From Bigelowiella natans CCMP2755 (lineage: Eukaryota > Protista > Cercozoa), in assembly GCA_000320545.1 (NCBI GenBank), contig ADNK01001071.1:1-64000 (forward strand): a stretch of 64,000 nt of DNA, read 5' to 3'. The translations under genes and the position numbers were made by a program. Shown in pieces: positions 23,183-31,200 of this stretch. The notes under the pieces are model-generated. The model saw only the letters and a list, made by a program, of their open reading frames with translations, was not told the DNA's origin and ran no database searches. How positions within the stretch are numbered: the stretch's first letter is position 1; every line of letters begins with the position of its first letter.

Positions 23183-24078
23183 CGTTGTGAGGTGTGTTAC
23201 AGGTAAACTCTTTGAACTACGAAGGAAACGTGGGATGGGCTGGTAGCTGTGAGGGCATTGCAGAGAGTGCTCGCAGAAGAGGAGCAGCGAGAGTTTAATT
23301 ACTGCATTTTATCATGTTGCGACAAAGGTTTTACGACAATTTCGGTCATTTTTCACGCCCCTTCGCAACGATTCCAAGCATGCCGCAAACACTTCGTGAA
23401 AAGGCAGATCAATTACACCACTCTTCTCACAGGAACTTCCCGACAGATAGGCTCTCCAAGAATCGCCAGATGTTCTTTCCAAAACCGGCTGCGTTTTCAC
23501 AAAATCGAGCTTGATCGAGAGACTTTCTTCTTCGCGAACCGATGTTTTGCCGGGAAAAACTTCTTTGTTTGCACGCAATGAGAAAATGCAGGGTGTCTGG
23601 AGGAAATTTGAGGCAAAATTCACGCCTTTGTTCTTCTTCTTGAAAGGCACGAAGGACACGCAAAAGATGCGAGCTCGCTTTTCAAGTTTTGCGCTTTTCA
23701 TTGCAACAGCCACAGTTGGACACCTGAACAAAACTTTCAAAACTTTTCCTGTTCGTCGTCGAACCTCTCAACGTGCATGAATGTGGAAAGAAAGAAAGAA
23801 ACGAGTGTGATCCACACAAAGTGAAATGGTCGAGGCGATGCAGCACAGCGTGTTGTCTGTGAATCATTCGTTCGTTCATGCAGTTGAACGACGTCCAATC
23901 GCATCGCAATCAAAGCCAGCCGTCTCGACAGTTTTCAGCCCAGCCAGCCAGCAGGTGCAAGTCCCAGCTAGCCAGCTGTGTTGGCTAGCTGGTGCGTTCG
24001 ATTGCATGGCCTGCAGTCGTTTGAGGTGCGTCCGTGAAGCTGACTTGTGGTCGATCTGCAACAGATCTAGCGATGTGC

Positions 24079-24404
24079 TGTAGCGCGTACCACTACGCGG
24101 GCACAAGTCACGTGCGACAACAAAGGGGTTGTCGCGGATATAGAATATAGATAACGTAGATATTAATACAGCATAGGCACGTGGGTTCCGGCGGGACTCA
24201 TGGCAGCACACCGGAAGTGTGCTGCCCCACGTGCGGCGGCATTCGCGAAAGCTTCGCGAATGATTACGCAGTGCACGATTTAATAAAAATATAATCTTTA
24301 ATAAAAATAAACACAACTCTTCAAAAGGAAGCAAACGTGCCTTTCCCCCCCCCTGCCTACTTGTGCACGTAGCGCCTCGGCCTGTGAACACCTTACGCGC
24401 AACA
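24079..24404 (+). repeat. 5' LTR (326 bp)
   Basis: TGTAGCGCGTA...TACGCGCAACA termini form an 11-bp inverted repeat with one mismatch; matches the 3' LTR. Confidence 0.97.
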
Positions 24405-24409
24405 ACCTT

Positions 24410-24465
24410 TGGCTTCCACGCGGGGAATCGAACCCCGATCTTGGGAGTGAAAATCCCATATCCTA
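24410..24465 (-). tRNA. Reverse-transcribed 3' 56 nt of mature tRNA-Glu(UUC) including CCA; not a complete tRNA gene
   Basis: Minus strand reads TAGGATA TGGGA TTTTCAC TCCCA AGAT CGGGG TTCGATT CCCCG CGTGGAA G CCA: anticodon stem-loop (TTC), T stem-loop, acceptor 3' strand, discriminator and CCA. The 5' ~19 nt are absent. Confidence 0.93.
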
Positions 24466-24774
24466 CGCGGGCACAAGTCACGTGCGACAACAAAGGGGTT
24501 GTCGCGGATATAGAATATAGATAACGTAGATATTAATACAGCATAGGCACGTGGGTTCCGGCGGGACTCATGGCAGCACACCGGAAGTGTGCTGCCCCAC
24601 GTGCGGCGGCATTCGCGAAAGCTTCGCGAATGATTACGCAGTGCACGATTTAATAAAAATATAATCTTTAATAAAAATAAACACAACTCTTCAAAAGGAA
24701 GCAAACGTGCCTTTCCCCCCCCCTGCCTACTTGTGCACGTAGCGCCTCGGCCTGTGAACACCTTACGCGCAACA
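24463..24774 (+). repeat. Second, internal LTR copy lacking the first 14 bp (312 bp)
   Basis: Matches LTR positions 15-326; joined to the tRNA copy through a shared CTA (24463-24465). Confidence 0.95.
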
Positions 24775-24779
24775 ACCTT

Positions 24780-24802
24780 TGGCTTCCACACACGGGAAAC
24801 GA
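24780..24802 (+). promoter_or_regulatory. Native primer-binding site for tRNA-Glu
   Basis: TGGCTTCCAC is a 10-nt perfect complement of the tRNA 3' end, followed by imperfect ACACGGGAAACGA; begins 5 nt (ACCTT) after the LTR end. Confidence 0.9.
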
Positions 24803-24813
24803 TTTGACTAACA

Positions 24814-27800
24814 ATGTCACAGCAGCTAGAAGAACAGCAGGACTTTGGCTCGCAGGCCGTGCAAGGGCACGAGCAGAAACAGGAAAGGAAGGGCGATACG
24901 GACGCTAAGGAAGGAGGAGGAACACCTCCACAGGCACCGCCGGGACCAGCACCCGGGATTAAGAAAGCAGATGCAGCAGCAGAGGCACTGGAGAACTTCT
25001 ACGAGGCGGACGACGAGGACGTGGCCGCCGAAAGCAAGAAGGTCGTAATGGCATTACGAGCCTTGCGACCCAGGGCGAGCAACTACGCCAAACTGAAAGT
25101 ATCGATAGAATACAAGTATCAGACACATGATGTTTGGGCAGCTATCATGCAGGACATCATGGATTACGAAGCAGACTTACCTCCAGAGTGGGCAGCTTTG
25201 TTTAGGAACGACGGGGGTCTGGGCGCCTCGCGGGGGACGACCCAGAGCACCGTCAAGCAGCAGCAGCCGGTACAGCGGAACACCCAGTTCATGTCTGTTA
25301 AAACAGCACCGGTTATGATAACGAAATACAACGGGAAAAGAGGTGAGGCAAGGAGGTGGTGGAAGAACGCTAGGAGTATACTCTGCGACTTTACCCCTAA
25401 CCCCACCGAAAACGACAAGCTCAAATGGCTAGCTATAATAAAGCAAGCCATGGACCTTTACGAGACAGGCAGGACCCGGATCAGGCAGCTAGAGAAAATA
25501 CACACTACAGTTAGTGGGCTACGAGACGTTGAGGCGATAATGAAGGCTTTTGTAAATGAACAGGATGCTAACTCCCTACCCCAGGCTATTAGAAAATACA
25601 GAGCAATGATGCAGCATGAGAGAGAACCTGTTAGAGACTTTGCCACGCGCTTCCAGGATATGATCGACGAACTACATGATTTTAATTACAACACAGGTGA
25701 TGATCAGGCAAGGTTTGAAGAGTTCAAGTTAAAGATAAAGGAATCCACTTACGTTACGGAGAAAGGCTACACCACGATGGAGGCAGCAGTGCAGGCTATA
25801 TCCCTACGCGAGCAGGAGCAGGACCGCAAGTTTACCAGCCCTAAGGTACCTGGCATAGGAAACATTAACGCTATTAAGCCGCAGCGAGACTGGTACAAGG
25901 ACAGGGAAGGTAACCGACGTTGCGGATACTGCTCACGTAAAGGGAAACACACCGCTAAAGACTGCAGAGACAGGAAAGAAGGACGACCCAGGATGACGAT
26001 CAGGCAGCTCAACGAACACTACGAGAAGTTAAAGAGAAAGAAAGGCAGAGGACAAGGATATAACAACAGCAAATGGCAAGGCAGCAACAACGGGAAGAAC
26101 AATAAATATAAGAACAAAAAGCAGAACAGTATCAATGCTATACAGCAGCAGATAAACGGAATATTAGATCACCTTAAGCAGGCGCCGACGAAGACAGCAG
26201 TACCAGCAACGCAGGACCAAGACAAGCCCATGACCCTAGACGACATAAAGAACTTAGGAGTATGCAACATTAATGACGAAGACGCTAACAGGACTATCAA
26301 AGTTGCTATGACCAAGGTTAAAGTTAAAGACAGCTACGGAGACTACAAGAAACTACCTGCCCTTTGGGATAGTGGCAGCATGCCGAAGTCCTTCATAAGC
26401 CTAAGCACAGTAAGAAGGTTAGGACTATTGGATCAAGTGACTAAGAAAGAACGTAAATATGCTCAAGCAGACGGAAGCTCTTCCATGAAGACCGTCGGTG
26501 AGCTAATGCTAAAGCTACAGATACCTGGCAGCGACGCGGAGACCCAAATCAAGACCCGAGTAGCCATGACTTTATCCATGGAACTACTCCTCGGACAGGA
26601 TGCCCTAGAAAAATTAGGGGGGATCATATCATTCTACAATCACAAGATATACTTTGCTAAGTTGCCAAAGAAGTCAGGCAGGACCATCAGCCAGAACATG
26701 ATACGGCTTGACGAGTGGACCTCTGAGTCAAGCGTTAATGCGTTAGAGTTTATGGACCTAGCGGACAACAAGCTACCTACACCTACCGAGCTACGGAAGA
26801 AGAACCCCGGCAAGACCATCCGACAGATAACGGAGCTACTGGACAAGACCCCCCCAGCTGATGATTGGGATATCGACAAAGGCAAAAAGTACATTAATAA
26901 AATATTAAACGAGAAGTACTCTGACATCACCAAGCCGACGACGAAGCCCTCCAGCAAGCTTACCCCAGTAAAGATCGAGCTAAAGAAGGGATACGAAGAG
27001 TGCATCATCAATGACCCAGAACATAGGCGACCGGAAGCGGACTGGGAAAAGATAGAGTGGCAGATCAATGAATGGGCAAAGGAAGGGAAGATAGAGCCAA
27101 GCAACTCACCATGGAACGTGAGACATGTGCTAGCTAAGAAACCTACTTACCCTTTCTTCCGCCTGGCGCACAACTTCATCCGCCACAACCGAGTAATAAA
27201 GAGGATCCAGACACCTACACCAAGGATAGATGACGTTATTGAACACGTCATAGGATACAAATACTACTCTTCCCTAGATAAAAATGAATCATACATGCAG
27301 ACACCCATCCACAAAACCTCCCGCCCCATTACCGCGTTCTCCAGCAGGCACAGGAAGTGGCACTTCGTCGTATTCCCTTACGGCCTAAGCATATCAGGGG
27401 ATGCGTTCAGTAGTCAGAACTACAGGGCATACACACATGATGGGATGGCGTCTGTGTTGTGGGTGTTTGTGTTTGTGTATGTGGATGATGACATAATATG
27501 TACCAACACAGTCGTCGCTCAGATCTTCCTCCTGGAAAATATATTTATTAGGTTTGCACACTTCGGTTTTACTATTAGACTGCAGAAGTGTACATTCCTA
27601 GCTACAAGAATCAAGTGGTGTGGATATTACCTGGAGCAAGGCCGCATCACCCCAAACCCCGAGAAAGTAGCAGCACTACAGCAAGCCCCTAAACCTAAGA
27701 ATGCAAAGGAGTTAAAGTCATTCTTGCAGACTGCAGCTTGGATACTACGTAGGTTCTCCCCTACCTACGCTAGGACTGCAGCTGCTTTTACTACTGCTTA

Positions 27801-29787
27801 CCGGAAGGAGAACTCTGTAGGCCTCAGCTTCGCTAAGGTGTGGGCCAAGGCTGGCCTTGATGCCCACTTCGATAACCTAATAAAGTTATGCAGCAACACC
27901 CTATTGAATGCTAAGCTAGACACTACTAGACCAGCTACCCTATGGACAGACTGGTCTAAGCTAGGTATGGCTGCTGTACTTACCCAAGACCAGCAGATCA
28001 TACGGGTGTGGGGCAGGGCCTGCACAGCAGCTGAGGCCAAGTACAGCCCTACAAAAGGAGAGTATAAAGCCATGACTGAGGCGCAGAGGAAACTAAGATA
28101 CTACCTGCTGTCGGTGCCCAGCTTCACCTTAATGACTGACCACAAGCCCCTCCTAGGCATCGACCGCAAGCTCGAAGCGCCTAACGATGAGTATGCAGCT
28201 ATGAGGGCGGACACGGAAGAGTTTAGGGACAAGAGGACAGTGGTCTACGCACCAGGAGACAAGCAGCTTGCTGACTATTTCAGCAGGCTGTTCGAAAAGA
28301 AAGTCCCTACCCAGGTCACCCCTATGGTTAACGCGATTACCTTCGAGGACGGCGACTTCCTGCCTGAGCCAGAGGAGCTCCAGCACCTTCAAGAACACCT
28401 GGATAAATACAAACACAAGCATGAGGTACTTAGTGATAGGATATATGTATACACTAATAATGTTAGGCGTACCTACGTGCCACGGCGGACCAGGGGAGCC
28501 CTTCTCTTTACCGCCCATGGACCTGCACACGTAGGAGAAAACCATATCACTGCTCTACTCTACCATTACTACTGGCCCTACAAGCTAAAAGAGATAAGGA
28601 CATACCTGCGTGGCTGCAGGTGCTCCAGCTTGAAGGCGGCAGGCGTCGCCACCAAGGAGTCCAGCAAGAGCCGTGCATCTAAGAAAATCAAAGCAAGGAA
28701 CTTCTTAGATATCGTGCAAATTGATGTTTATAAGTACGATGGCTATCACTACCTTACCTTCGTTGATGTGGCCACTGGAAAGTGCTGGGTTAAAAAGATT
28801 ATCAAGGTCAACGTTGCTAAGAAGAACAAAGGCTTATATAAGCAGAGGCTTACTAACTGCTACCGTACCTGGGAGTCTGAGCTCCAGGCTATCCCTGATG
28901 AAGTTAGCATAAACAAGATACCAAAGAAGTTACATGTGGATAATGAGACCTCTCTTCTACAGCTACCACACCCTAATATTGATGCCTCACCTGTATACTA
29001 TGCCCAGTCCAACTCCAAGGTAGAGCGACTCCACCGCACCTTGGCCAACCTAAGCAGGATAAATAGCACCACACCAGACAAGATACAAGGGTTAGTAAAC
29101 GACACCTTCACGTCTGGGGGAGGTATCAAGGATAAGGAGAGGGAAGAAGGCGACGACAACGACGACGATACCGAGAGCGAAGACGAGAAGGTCCCGTACG
29201 ATGGCCGAGTTCTAAAGGAAGGACAGTATGTTAGGGCCAAGGTAAATCTGAGATCGAGAAATAAACAAGACCCCTTCTGGGGTGGCGTTGCAAAGGTTAC
29301 CGAGAGGAAGGGGAGGAAGCAGTACTACATCTATGATGGGAACAGGGTCACCTTGCGCCACATCAGTCACCTAAAGAATTATGATATCGGTGAGAAGCTC
29401 CTAGAGGATGTTAAAGTAAACCCTACTGTGTGGGAGCGAGCAATGCCTTGTTTAGGACCCCGACCTAAGTTCGATGTGGAATATGGAAACAATAAGGTCA
29501 GGGTGAACGACGATTGGCGCATGAAGATTGTCTATCTAGGCTACCCTGGATTACGAAATATGGAGAGGGTAGCTATGAAAATAAAGGACGGAAAATATCA
29601 GCTACTCTACCTAGCTGTTCCCGACTTACCCTTTGAGCACTGGTATAAGGTCCTGGGGGACCTTGATGCAGAGGGCTGGTATGGACACGAACCTAAGGAC
29701 GAAGGTGAGTTCTGGGTAAGCGACAAAGGAGATAAGGTTAGAGAGGAATCTATTACCTGGTGGTTGGTGAAGTTCCGAAAGCGATGA
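24814..29787 (+). CDS. Gag-Pol polyprotein, 1657 aa: Gag, Zn knuckle, aspartic protease, RT, RNase H, integrase and a C-terminal methyltransferase-like extension
   Basis: CGYCSRKGKHTAKDC; ALWDSGS; SPWN, YSSLD, FPYGL, YVDD; LWTDWS...YSPTKGE...TDHKPL...LADYFSR; H-x3-H...CRC, QIDV, VDNE, SNSKVERLHRTL. Uninterrupted frame. Confidence 0.96.
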   Translation: MSQQLEEQQDFGSQAVQGHEQKQERKGDTDAKEGGGTPPQAPPGPAPGIKKADAAAEALENFYEADDEDVAAESKKVVMALRALRPRASNYAKLKVSIEYKYQTHDVWAAIMQDIMDYEADLPPEWAALFRNDGGLGASRGTTQSTVKQQQPVQRNTQFMSVKTAPVMITKYNGKRGEARRWWKNARSILCDFTPNPTENDKLKWLAIIKQAMDLYETGRTRIRQLEKIHTTVSGLRDVEAIMKAFVNEQDANSLPQAIRKYRAMMQHEREPVRDFATRFQDMIDELHDFNYNTGDDQARFEEFKLKIKESTYVTEKGYTTMEAAVQAISLREQEQDRKFTSPKVPGIGNINAIKPQRDWYKDREGNRRCGYCSRKGKHTAKDCRDRKEGRPRMTIRQLNEHYEKLKRKKGRGQGYNNSKWQGSNNGKNNKYKNKKQNSINAIQQQINGILDHLKQAPTKTAVPATQDQDKPMTLDDIKNLGVCNINDEDANRTIKVAMTKVKVKDSYGDYKKLPALWDSGSMPKSFISLSTVRRLGLLDQVTKKERKYAQADGSSSMKTVGELMLKLQIPGSDAETQIKTRVAMTLSMELLLGQDALEKLGGIISFYNHKIYFAKLPKKSGRTISQNMIRLDEWTSESSVNALEFMDLADNKLPTPTELRKKNPGKTIRQITELLDKTPPADDWDIDKGKKYINKILNEKYSDITKPTTKPSSKLTPVKIELKKGYEECIINDPEHRRPEADWEKIEWQINEWAKEGKIEPSNSPWNVRHVLAKKPTYPFFRLAHNFIRHNRVIKRIQTPTPRIDDVIEHVIGYKYYSSLDKNESYMQTPIHKTSRPITAFSSRHRKWHFVVFPYGLSISGDAFSSQNYRAYTHDGMASVLWVFVFVYVDDDIICTNTVVAQIFLLENIFIRFAHFGFTIRLQKCTFLATRIKWCGYYLEQGRITPNPEKVAALQQAPKPKNAKELKSFLQTAAWILRRFSPTYARTAAAFTTAYRKENSVGLSFAKVWAKAGLDAHFDNLIKLCSNTLLNAKLDTTRPATLWTDWSKLGMAAVLTQDQQIIRVWGRACTAAEAKYSPTKGEYKAMTEAQRKLRYYLLSVPSFTLMTDHKPLLGIDRKLEAPNDEYAAMRADTEEFRDKRTVVYAPGDKQLADYFSRLFEKKVPTQVTPMVNAITFEDGDFLPEPEELQHLQEHLDKYKHKHEVLSDRIYVYTNNVRRTYVPRRTRGALLFTAHGPAHVGENHITALLYHYYWPYKLKEIRTYLRGCRCSSLKAAGVATKESSKSRASKKIKARNFLDIVQIDVYKYDGYHYLTFVDVATGKCWVKKIIKVNVAKKNKGLYKQRLTNCYRTWESELQAIPDEVSINKIPKKLHVDNETSLLQLPHPNIDASPVYYAQSNSKVERLHRTLANLSRINSTTPDKIQGLVNDTFTSGGGIKDKEREEGDDNDDDTESEDEKVPYDGRVLKEGQYVRAKVNLRSRNKQDPFWGGVAKVTERKGRKQYYIYDGNRVTLRHISHLKNYDIGEKLLEDVKVNPTVWERAMPCLGPRPKFDVEYGNNKVRVNDDWRMKIVYLGYPGLRNMERVAMKIKDGKYQLLYLAVPDLPFEHWYKVLGDLDAEGWYGHEPKDEGEFWVSDKGDKVREESITWWLVKFRKR

Positions 29788-29830
29788 AGGTCTAAGGGAA
29801 TAAGGAAGGAAGGAAGGAGCAACGTGACTT

Positions 29831-29838
29831 GGGGGAGG
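29831..29838 (+). promoter_or_regulatory. Polypurine tract abutting the 3' LTR
   Basis: GGGGGAGG immediately before TG at 29839; a longer purine-rich run lies at about 29794-29819. Confidence 0.8.
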
Positions 29839-30164
29839 TGTAGCGCGTACCACTACGCGGGCACAAGTCACGTGCGACAACAAAGGGGTTGTCGCGGATA
29901 TAGAATATAGATAACGTAGATATTAATACAGCATAGGCACGTGGGTTCCGGCGGGACTCATGGCAGCACACCGGAAGTGTGCTGCCCCACGTGCGGCGGC
30001 ATTCGCGAAAGCTTCGCGAATGATTACGCAGTGCACGATTTAATAAAAATATAATCTTTAATAAAAATAAACACAACTCTTCAAAAGGAAGCAAACGTGC
30101 CTTTCCCCCCCCCTGCCTACTTGTGCACGTAGCGCCTCGGCCTGTGAACACCTTACGCGCAACA
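29839..30164 (+). repeat. 3' LTR (326 bp)
   Basis: Same sequence as 24079-24404; followed by the GTGC duplication. Confidence 0.97.
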
Positions 30165-31200
30165 GTGCTGGCATCGCTGTTGCCGAATGTGCGTTGTGTG
30201 ACGTGTGCACATCGTCACAGCGTTGTTTCTGCATGGACGATTCAGCTGGCTGGCGATGTGCGCGTGCACTGGAATCACTTGCTCAGTCGATCGTGTCCGA
30301 ATTGCGACCCAAGTCTGCAATGTTGGCTTGCTAGCTTGCTGCCTGCCACTGAACCAAACCAGCAAAGTGACACGCAAGCGCATCACTCACGCGCAAGTCT
30401 GGGTGTTCGGGCGTTGCTGATCCAATGACAACATCTGAACGCACGCAGCGTGCATGGACTCATCCATGCCAGCATGGCCACTGGGCTAGCTGGTGCGTTC
30501 CAGCACGACTGGACATGGACAGACACACCAGCTAGCCAGCGTGTCCACGATGTGCATGCTAGCATGCTCGCGTGTCGATGTCAAGTTTTCATTGGGTCAA
30601 ACCTGGACACGTCTAGACATGTGTGTGCGTGTGGGCACACACCTAGACACGGCACATGCTACTTGCACGTGCATGCGCATCAACTTTCAATTGAGCCACG
30701 CTAGCACGCATCTGACAAGCTAGCTAGCTAGCAAGGCCAGGAGTGACAATGTTTTCCGATGGACACGGCAACTAGTCTGCCATTTAGCCATGTCCATTGA
30801 GCATGCCATGCATGAGCTAAGTGATTTTTTTTGTGCACGAACTCTGCATTGGAATTCATCTGTTCATCATGAAACAATTGCTCTTGGTGTGGGACAGTCT
30901 AGCAGTTCAGATTTGGTCTCATTGGAAGAATGAAGCGTCGTTCACTACCCAGCATGAAATGTGGTTTTTTCATTGAGCCAATTAGTGACAAAAGCACTTG
31001 AAAGCAGTGCCGCTCCAACGGCTGCAAAATGTAGAGATGCACACATGTGAGTAGGTTCCAAGCGATGGCTTTTAGTGAAGTGAACTGTGAATCGTATTCG
31101 CAACATGCGAGCATTTCGGATTGGAAAATAACTTGAAATTAATTTTCCATGAAATTTCCAATGTTATTGAAAGCATTCGAAGGTTTTTGCCCTCGCCGAA

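Follow-up and report, generated by a model that had tools for sequence, protein, structure and literature searches.

In a stretch of 64,000 nucleotides from the genome of the chlorarachniophyte alga Bigelowiella natans CCMP2755 (contig ADNK01001071.1, positions 1 to 64,000; hereafter the window), we find an integrated retrotransposon that carries three LTRs, the first two of which are separated by a copy of part of its own primer tRNA. We think it probable that this three-LTR copy is a one-off, faulty product of reverse transcription, in which synthesis read through the primer as far as the D loop, re-primed on an LTR at the trinucleotide CTA, and gave a molecule that was then integrated.

The three-LTR copy and its family

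The unit lies at 24075-30168 of the window, enclosed by a 4-bp target-site duplication, GTGC, at 24075-24078 and again at 30165-30168. LTR1 (24079-24404, plus strand) is full length, with 326 nt of the form TG...CA, and shares 100% identity with LTR3 as well as with dozens of copies elsewhere in the genome. It is followed by the spacer ACCTT (24405-24409, plus strand), the same 5 nt that lead from the end of U5 to the PBS in 315 normal copies. At the PBS position itself, mature tRNA-Glu(UUC, G73) is copied over its 3'-terminal 53-56 nt, CCA included (24410-24465, tRNA sense on the minus strand), a tract that sequence comparison places at tRNA positions 76 down to 21/20a. A match of 56/56 exactly at this position is far beyond chance. 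LTR2 (24463-24774, plus strand) lacks LTR nt 1-14 and otherwise shows 100% identity to LTR1 (nt 15-326) and LTR3; at the junction, CTA (24463-24465, plus strand) can be read either as the end of the tRNA copy (positions 22-20a) or as LTR nt 15-17. A second ACCTT (24775-24779) and the native PBS TGGCTTCCAC (24780-24789) follow on the plus strand, and this stretch (24775-24789) has the same context as 315 genomic junctions. Beyond them lie an uninterrupted gag-pol ORF of 1657 aa with Pfam domains (24814-29787, plus strand), the PPT GGGGGAGG (29831-29838, plus strand) directly 5' of LTR3, and the full-length LTR3 (29839-30164, plus strand), 100% identical to LTR1. All three LTRs show 100% identity across their shared length, and the gap between LTR1 and LTR2 in the assembly is 61 nt, made up of ACCTT and the tRNA tract.

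A preliminary description of this DNA had proposed the layout LTR(326)-ACCTT-56-nt tRNA complement-LTR without its first 14 nt-ACCTT-PBS-gag-pol, with CTA common to tRNA and LTR at the junction and a clean 4-bp target-site duplication. Reading 23600-25400 and 29700-30360 confirmed that order, and the duplication resembles those of two other copies (TGAT on contig C2143, GCAA on contig C3705), so that 4 bp is the length in all three. Both flanks of the insertion are strongly depleted in TpA (observed/expected 0.10 in 23600-24078 and 0.27 in 30165-30700) and enriched in TG/CA; the element itself, at 1.13, is not depleted.

Judged from its sequence, the family is a young, very abundant Ty3/gypsy (Metaviridae) LTR retrotransposon that is active now or was so recently. 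Its copies have direct LTRs bounded by TG...CA, a PBS and a PPT beside the LTRs, a short target-site duplication and an ordered set of pol domains. Along the ORF, Pfam matches run from gag-asp_proteas (513-599, weak) through RVT_1 (798-939) and RT_RNaseH (1036-1118) to Integrase_H2C2 (residues ~1222-1269, weak and below the cut-off), and this order of protease, RT, RNase H and integrase places the element in Ty3/gypsy. No Pfam match to the rve core was found in the 1657-aa ORF, and the C-terminal 130 aa of the pol ORF (29404-29787) gave no significant Pfam match. The exact window protein sits in a EukProt cluster of Bigelowiella natans (JGI Bigna1) proteins, to which an MMETSP transcript also belongs. 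A genome search with the LTR returned 685 candidates, and all 40 of the 40 that were scored are 100% identical; the 91-Mb assembly contains 315 exact instances of the pattern 'LTR end-ACCTT-native PBS'. Among the contigs of sequencing runs, the context of the PPT GGGGGAGG recurs as loose ends before LTR starts.

Two further arrangements were seen in the family. When run X1 was compared with 24078-24404, contigs of 2025 runs showed an LTR end joined through 8 nt (CACCGCAC) to an LTR start, along with other LTR-to-LTR arrangements; as these are absent from the assembly, they suggest new or polymorphic insertions and ongoing activity. At C2955:39292-40947 (L047) lies an internally deleted copy in which LTR-ACCTT-TGGCTTCCAC is fused directly to the interior at window 28740. 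In the intact element, the base just before this point belongs to TGGCTATCAC, which matches the PBS at 8/10 positions, and the deletion of ~3.9 kb resembles the outcome of plus-strand transfer to an ectopic sequence similar to the PBS.

A mature tRNA-Glu(UUC) as the source of the tract

Searching the genome with the tract led to tRNA-Glu(UUC) genes at C2833:164775-164827, C2811:11198-11249 and C2427:6925-7156. The gene on C2833 matches the tract at 53 of its 53 gene-encoded nt and then continues with ACCTGTCTTTTTT (beginning ACCTGTC), not CCA. Among the tRNA-Glu(UUC) genes found, it alone has a G73 discriminator; the others, which the PBS does not fit, have A73 with GTACAT or CATATG after it, and none of the genes encodes CCA. 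The tRNA-Glu(UUC) genes found thus fall into two isodecoders that split at the discriminator, with one G73 gene and several A73 genes, some of the latter in a tandem cluster, 180 bp apart. Because CCA is present in the tract and absent from the matching gene, the template was, as the preliminary description had supposed, the mature, CCA-tailed tRNA of the G73 isodecoder and not captured DNA. Consistent with this, the tract is contiguous with U5 and antisense to the mature tRNA, and its first three bases, at the PBS position, complement CCA.

The native PBS, TGGCTTCCAC, is complementary to the 10 nt at the 3' end of tRNA-Glu(UUC, G73)-CCA. Complementarity stops there, and the next bases (ACAC...) mismatch. 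A search as broad as one pattern, a T-loop plus TGTGGAAG, for an alternative tRNA with a fit to the native PBS longer than 10 nt gave four matches, compared with one in the control, and ARAGORN recognized none of them as a tRNA.

Certain LTR retrotransposon lineages target tRNA genes, and ARAGORN calls a tRNA gene at 24410-24487; both would speak for an event at the level of DNA, in which insertion took place next to a tRNA gene, or a piece of such a gene was captured. The 78-nt tRNA-Glu(UUC) call on the minus strand is, however, a false gene, since it borrows LTR bases as its acceptor strand, and the resemblance of LTR nt 14-22 to the complement of the tRNA 5' end accounts for it. Capture of DNA also sits badly with a tract that lacks tRNA nt 1-19, runs antisense, and is contiguous with U5 and ACCTT at the exact PBS position. 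With a CCA that no gene encodes, and with the flank of the matching Glu-TTC gene absent from the locus, we regard capture of a tRNA gene as ruled out for every practical purpose.

Recurrence of the tracts and origin of the junction

A pattern search of the whole assembly found tRNA-type bases after PBS nt 10 at five loci, four of which have long tracts. All four long tracts end 54-56 nt into the tRNA, in the D loop at A21/U20a, and the downstream junction differs in each. In the window, the tract ends in ..ATATCCTA and is joined, with CTA shared, to LTR nt 15-18 within the three-LTR unit and its GTGC duplication. On C197 it ends in ..ATATCCT and is joined, with no shared bases, to GGGAAACG at window 24794, 15 nt past the start of the native PBS. 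On C2143 it ends in ..ATATCC and is joined, with 1 nt shared, to GATTTG at window 24800. The C197 and C2143 copies therefore carry a 55-nt tRNA complement in place of the native 10-nt PBS. On C3228, where the contig ends inside the element, ..ATATCCT is joined, with TCCT shared, to inverted interior at window 29317. Since the C2143 copy is otherwise complete, 100% identical to the window copy and flanked by a TGAT duplication, products with tRNA tracts do integrate.

The D loop of this tRNA reads A14 A15 C16 G18 G19 U20 U20a A21, and the tracts run from A76 through G22 and A21, to U20a at most. By simple arithmetic, the chance that four junctions fall within a 3-nt span of ~57 possible endpoints is ~1.5e-4. 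Molecules with tRNA tails account for ~1.3% of the junctions in the assembly (4 of ~320). The fifth locus, C3705:47767-52913 (L056, L057), is an older copy with ~98% LTR identity, a GCAA duplication and an internal deletion corresponding to window 27329-27893. Three positions of its PBS depart from the native sequence, each in the direction of tRNA-Glu, which extends the tRNA match to 16 nt as opposed to 10; this PBS represents either the ancestral state or a short patch of tRNA sequence that was inherited.

Read-through thus recurs in three copies besides that of the window, and the exact tRNA-LTR junction does not: a 74-nt query across it matches the window only, once in the 91-Mb assembly, where the native junction occurs 315 times. 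A metagenome scan gave no match to the LTR-tRNA junction. We also aligned contigs of sequencing runs to 23700-24900. The junction of flank and LTR1 is present in contigs of runs X1, X13 and X5, whereas none of the contigs listed bridges the inner tRNA-LTR2 junction (24465/24466), for which the evidence is accordingly the assembly itself. A contig of run X5, which may be RNA, has 24464 joined to 24794 at a depth of 497; this is the C197-type junction, and it lends independent support to at least one of the events. One contig of run X13 (record 13) has, after the LTR end and ACCTT, 56 nt of tRNA and then 329 letters of dissimilar sequence, and represents either a graph path into a real tRNA gene or a longer read-through copy that is absent from the assembly.

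In the established scheme, plus-strand strong-stop DNA starts at the PPT and extends through the LTR into the primer tRNA, which is still attached and of which 18 nt are copied before m1A58 halts synthesis. In the origin that we favor, mature tRNA-Glu(UUC, G73) would prime minus-strand synthesis on the 10-nt PBS, and plus-strand strong-stop DNA would begin at the polypurine tract and copy the LTR and the ACCTT spacer. It would then copy ~55 nt of the attached tRNA, compared with the usual ~18 nt, passing A58, the T arm, the variable loop and the anticodon arm before stalling at A21/U20a in the D loop. The tailed DNA would be unable to pair past the 10-nt PBS, and its 3' end (..CTA) would re-prime on minus-strand LTR DNA at LTR nt 15-17 and copy the LTR again. 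Normal plus-strand transfer could then be completed, the minus strand would copy the composite end to give LTR-ACCTT-tRNA-deltaLTR-ACCTT-PBS, and integrase, acting on intact outer ends, would leave the 4-bp GTGC duplication. The course of read-through past A58, the T arm and the anticodon arm, with a stop near position 20, had been suggested before, and the end of the tract at A21/U20a agrees with it. Beyond the break come 8 nt, CTACGCGG, that agree with LTR nt 15-22 as well as with the complement of tRNA nt 3-10, which makes the exact path of the switch ambiguous; it may have taken two steps, with a skip in the D loop, a few more tRNA bases copied, and then a homology-guided switch to the LTR.

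The main competing account of the tRNA-LTR2 join is end-joining by the host, in which the tRNA-tailed right end of a cDNA was ligated through CTA to a left end resected by 14 nt. The product would be a 2-LTR circle or a head-to-tail dimer, and a dimer, once integrated, would have lost its first interior by LTR-LTR recombination or by collapse in the assembler. A circle or dimer junction would show its parts in the order LTR-tRNA-LTR, as here, and a passage of PMC12220202 puts on record a cloned MLV circle with tRNA between its LTRs. The identity of the copies would let collapse or recombination pass without trace, and a collapsed dimer of the form LTR-int-LTR-tRNA-deltaLTR-int-LTR is compatible with copies that are 100% identical. 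Against this, the other three tracts are joined to internal sites, two just past the PBS and one inverted in pol, and not to cDNA ends. Such joins fit template switching by a free 3' end and do not fit ligation of cDNA ends. Plain LTR-LTR junctions with a gap of 0-12 nt, sought as a sign of circle-derived insertions, number 0 in the assembly, a single clean 4-bp duplication surrounds the unit, and end-joining requires extra steps. We therefore consider host end-joining unlikely, and reverse transcriptase would have made the join. Two related structures do not agree with the assembly: a 2-LTR circle junction, as the unit sits in a chromosome between unique flanks and a duplicated target site, and a tandem LTR-int-LTR-int-LTR array from unequal recombination, as the assembly has 61 nt and no interior between LTR1 and LTR2.

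The tRNA-LTR2 junction could also stem from a chimeric read, or from a misjoin within a family that has hundreds of identical repeats. The repeat family is huge and identical, the inner junction is in none of the contigs listed, and two of the other contigs with tracts, C197 and C3228, are short and break off within the element. However, a 3-nt overlap is too little for an assembler to make a join, so that at least one read must carry the junction; moreover, three other contigs share the endpoint of the tract, one of the other tract junctions (that of C197 type) was found independently in X5, the flank-LTR1 junction appears in three runs, and the outer duplications match. An assembly or cloning artefact is thus very unlikely. 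The preliminary description had left room for either a frozen accident or a heritable two-PBS architecture. The latter would be a functional, three-LTR design whose transcript, with its long antisense-tRNA tract, might, for example, recruit the primer tRNA or contact tRNA fragments. The intact ORF and the three identical LTRs would suit it, as would the 55-nt tRNA complements that serve as PBSs in C197 and C2143 and the depth of 497 of the C197-type junction in X5, a run that may be RNA. Each of the four junctions is nevertheless found once in the assembly, against 315 native ones, with no visible propagation; we judge a heritable design more improbable still than an artefact, and of the two earlier proposals it is the frozen aberrant transfer, with its single junction in 91 Mb, that the data favor.

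If reverse transcription made these joins, a tRNA-tailed strand may be produced often or always and be rescued occasionally by 3'-end priming with 0-4 nt of homology. The sites of rescue would be minus-strand DNA just past the PBS (C197, C2143), a plus-sense pol template (C3228), and minus-strand DNA at LTR nt 15-17 (window). The most likely explanation for the passage of A58 is that A58 was unmethylated in the template tRNA. Because the correct T stands opposite A58 in 4/4 tracts, unmodified A58 is favored over error-prone bypass. The stop at 20a/21 could reflect a modified U20/U20a that blocks RT, or run-off at the 5' end of a tRNA fragment cleaved in the D loop. Homologues of TRM61 and of DTW-domain proteins are present in the genome, which is silent on the modification of this particular tRNA; given the TRM61 homologue, the absence of m1A58 is not to be taken for granted. 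These considerations give a testable prediction for the tRNA-Glu of B. natans, namely an unmethylated A58 together with either a block at U20/U20a or a primer cleaved in the D loop.

Rather doubtful, in our judgement, is the stronger proposal that plus-strand strong-stop DNA routinely runs 55 nt into tRNA-Glu(UUC), with no m1A58 block and a hard stop at U20/U20a. Were it true, normal replication would have to use a Ty1/Ty3-like route that discards the tRNA-bearing strand, and the integrated tracts would come from dead-end molecules that had been rescued, and would preserve a record of how an algal tRNA is modified. The C197 and C2143 copies, with a 55-nt tRNA complement as PBS, would then be natural 'super-PBS' variants whose fitness could be measured.

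Read-through of primer tRNA in known systems

In retroviruses, m1A58, backed by m5Um54, is needed for RT to stop (Fukuda et al., PMC8599865). Without the m1A58/m5Um54 stop, synthesis enters the tRNA and the DNA becomes non-complementary after transfer, so that it is said to be non-integrable (PMC8599865). The B. natans tracts resemble the case of HIV-1 with m1A58-deficient tRNA-Lys3, in which the plus strand likewise extends past the 18-nt PBS copy into the tRNA and becomes non-complementary (PMC8599865). However, the HIV-1 case is a defect seen in vitro and in cell culture, whereas B. natans has integrated copies with a tract of ~55 nt that ends in the D loop.

Ty1 and Ty3 also have short PBSs. 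As set out in passages of PMC5371799 and PMC7472051 on the Lauermann-Boeke model, their first, tRNA-bearing strong-stop DNA is displaced as a dead end, and it is a later strong-stop DNA, made after removal of the tRNA, that is transferred, so that the tRNA copy is not inherited. Because the B. natans family combines 315 unchanged 10-nt PBSs with a few rescued, tRNA-bearing exceptions, this model fits it. The likeness extends to the short PBS (10 nt), to a tRNA copy that is normally not inherited and, by these accounts, to a tRNA-bearing strong-stop DNA that is a displaced dead end; the tracts differ in length, since ~12 nt of tRNA are copied in Ty3 according to the same passages and ~55 nt in B. 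natans.

A possible second point of resemblance concerns the bipartite PBS of Ty3, in which U3 pairs with the primer. LTR nt 14-22 (ACTACGCGG; 24092-24100, 24462-24470 and 29852-29860), near the start of U3, are complementary to tRNA-Glu nt 3-11, the strand freed once the acceptor stem opens on the PBS. A tRNA match of at least 9 nt arises anywhere in the element in 65% of tRNA shuffles and within LTR nt 1-30 in ~1%, the latter for a location that was picked post hoc.

A structural counterpart is a circular Moloney MLV DNA cloned by Colicelli and Goff 1986 (J Virol 57:674), which, as a passage of PMC12220202 recounts, has tRNA between two LTRs. It shares the order LTR-tRNA copy-LTR, and its tRNA, too, was reverse-transcribed during viral DNA synthesis. 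As described there, however, the MLV circle was unintegrated and came from a mutant virus with a spurious tRNA-Gly primer, whereas the B. natans copy is chromosomal, carries its cognate primer, and has a truncated second LTR and a target-site duplication. The same source, in part of its text, reports the HITME recombinants of Konstantinova 2006, in which template switching brought 63-65 nt of cellular tRNA, including tRNA-Glu, into a retroviral genome (PMC12220202). There, by that account, the tRNA was not the primer and the insert replaced an engineered hairpin in nef; in B. natans it is the primer itself, at the PBS. We found no description of integrated LTR-tRNA-LTR copies or of this alga's retrotransposons in a literature whose older part was thinly covered, which makes this weak evidence of novelty.

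Read-through of primer tRNA and tRNA between LTRs are already known from retroviral work, and the B. natans copy does not represent a new class of mobile element. It is an ordinary element with unusually informative accidents of replication, of moderate interest, chiefly for the study of reverse transcription and tRNA modification. The four tracts would document the rescue, in nature, of tailed strong-stop DNA that re-primes through microhomology at sites of three kinds, and two of the elements that carry them have a 55-nt PBS (C197, C2143). Retroviral biochemistry treats read-through of the primer tRNA as a non-integrable dead end (PMC8599865); the genome of B. natans holds four integrated products of it.
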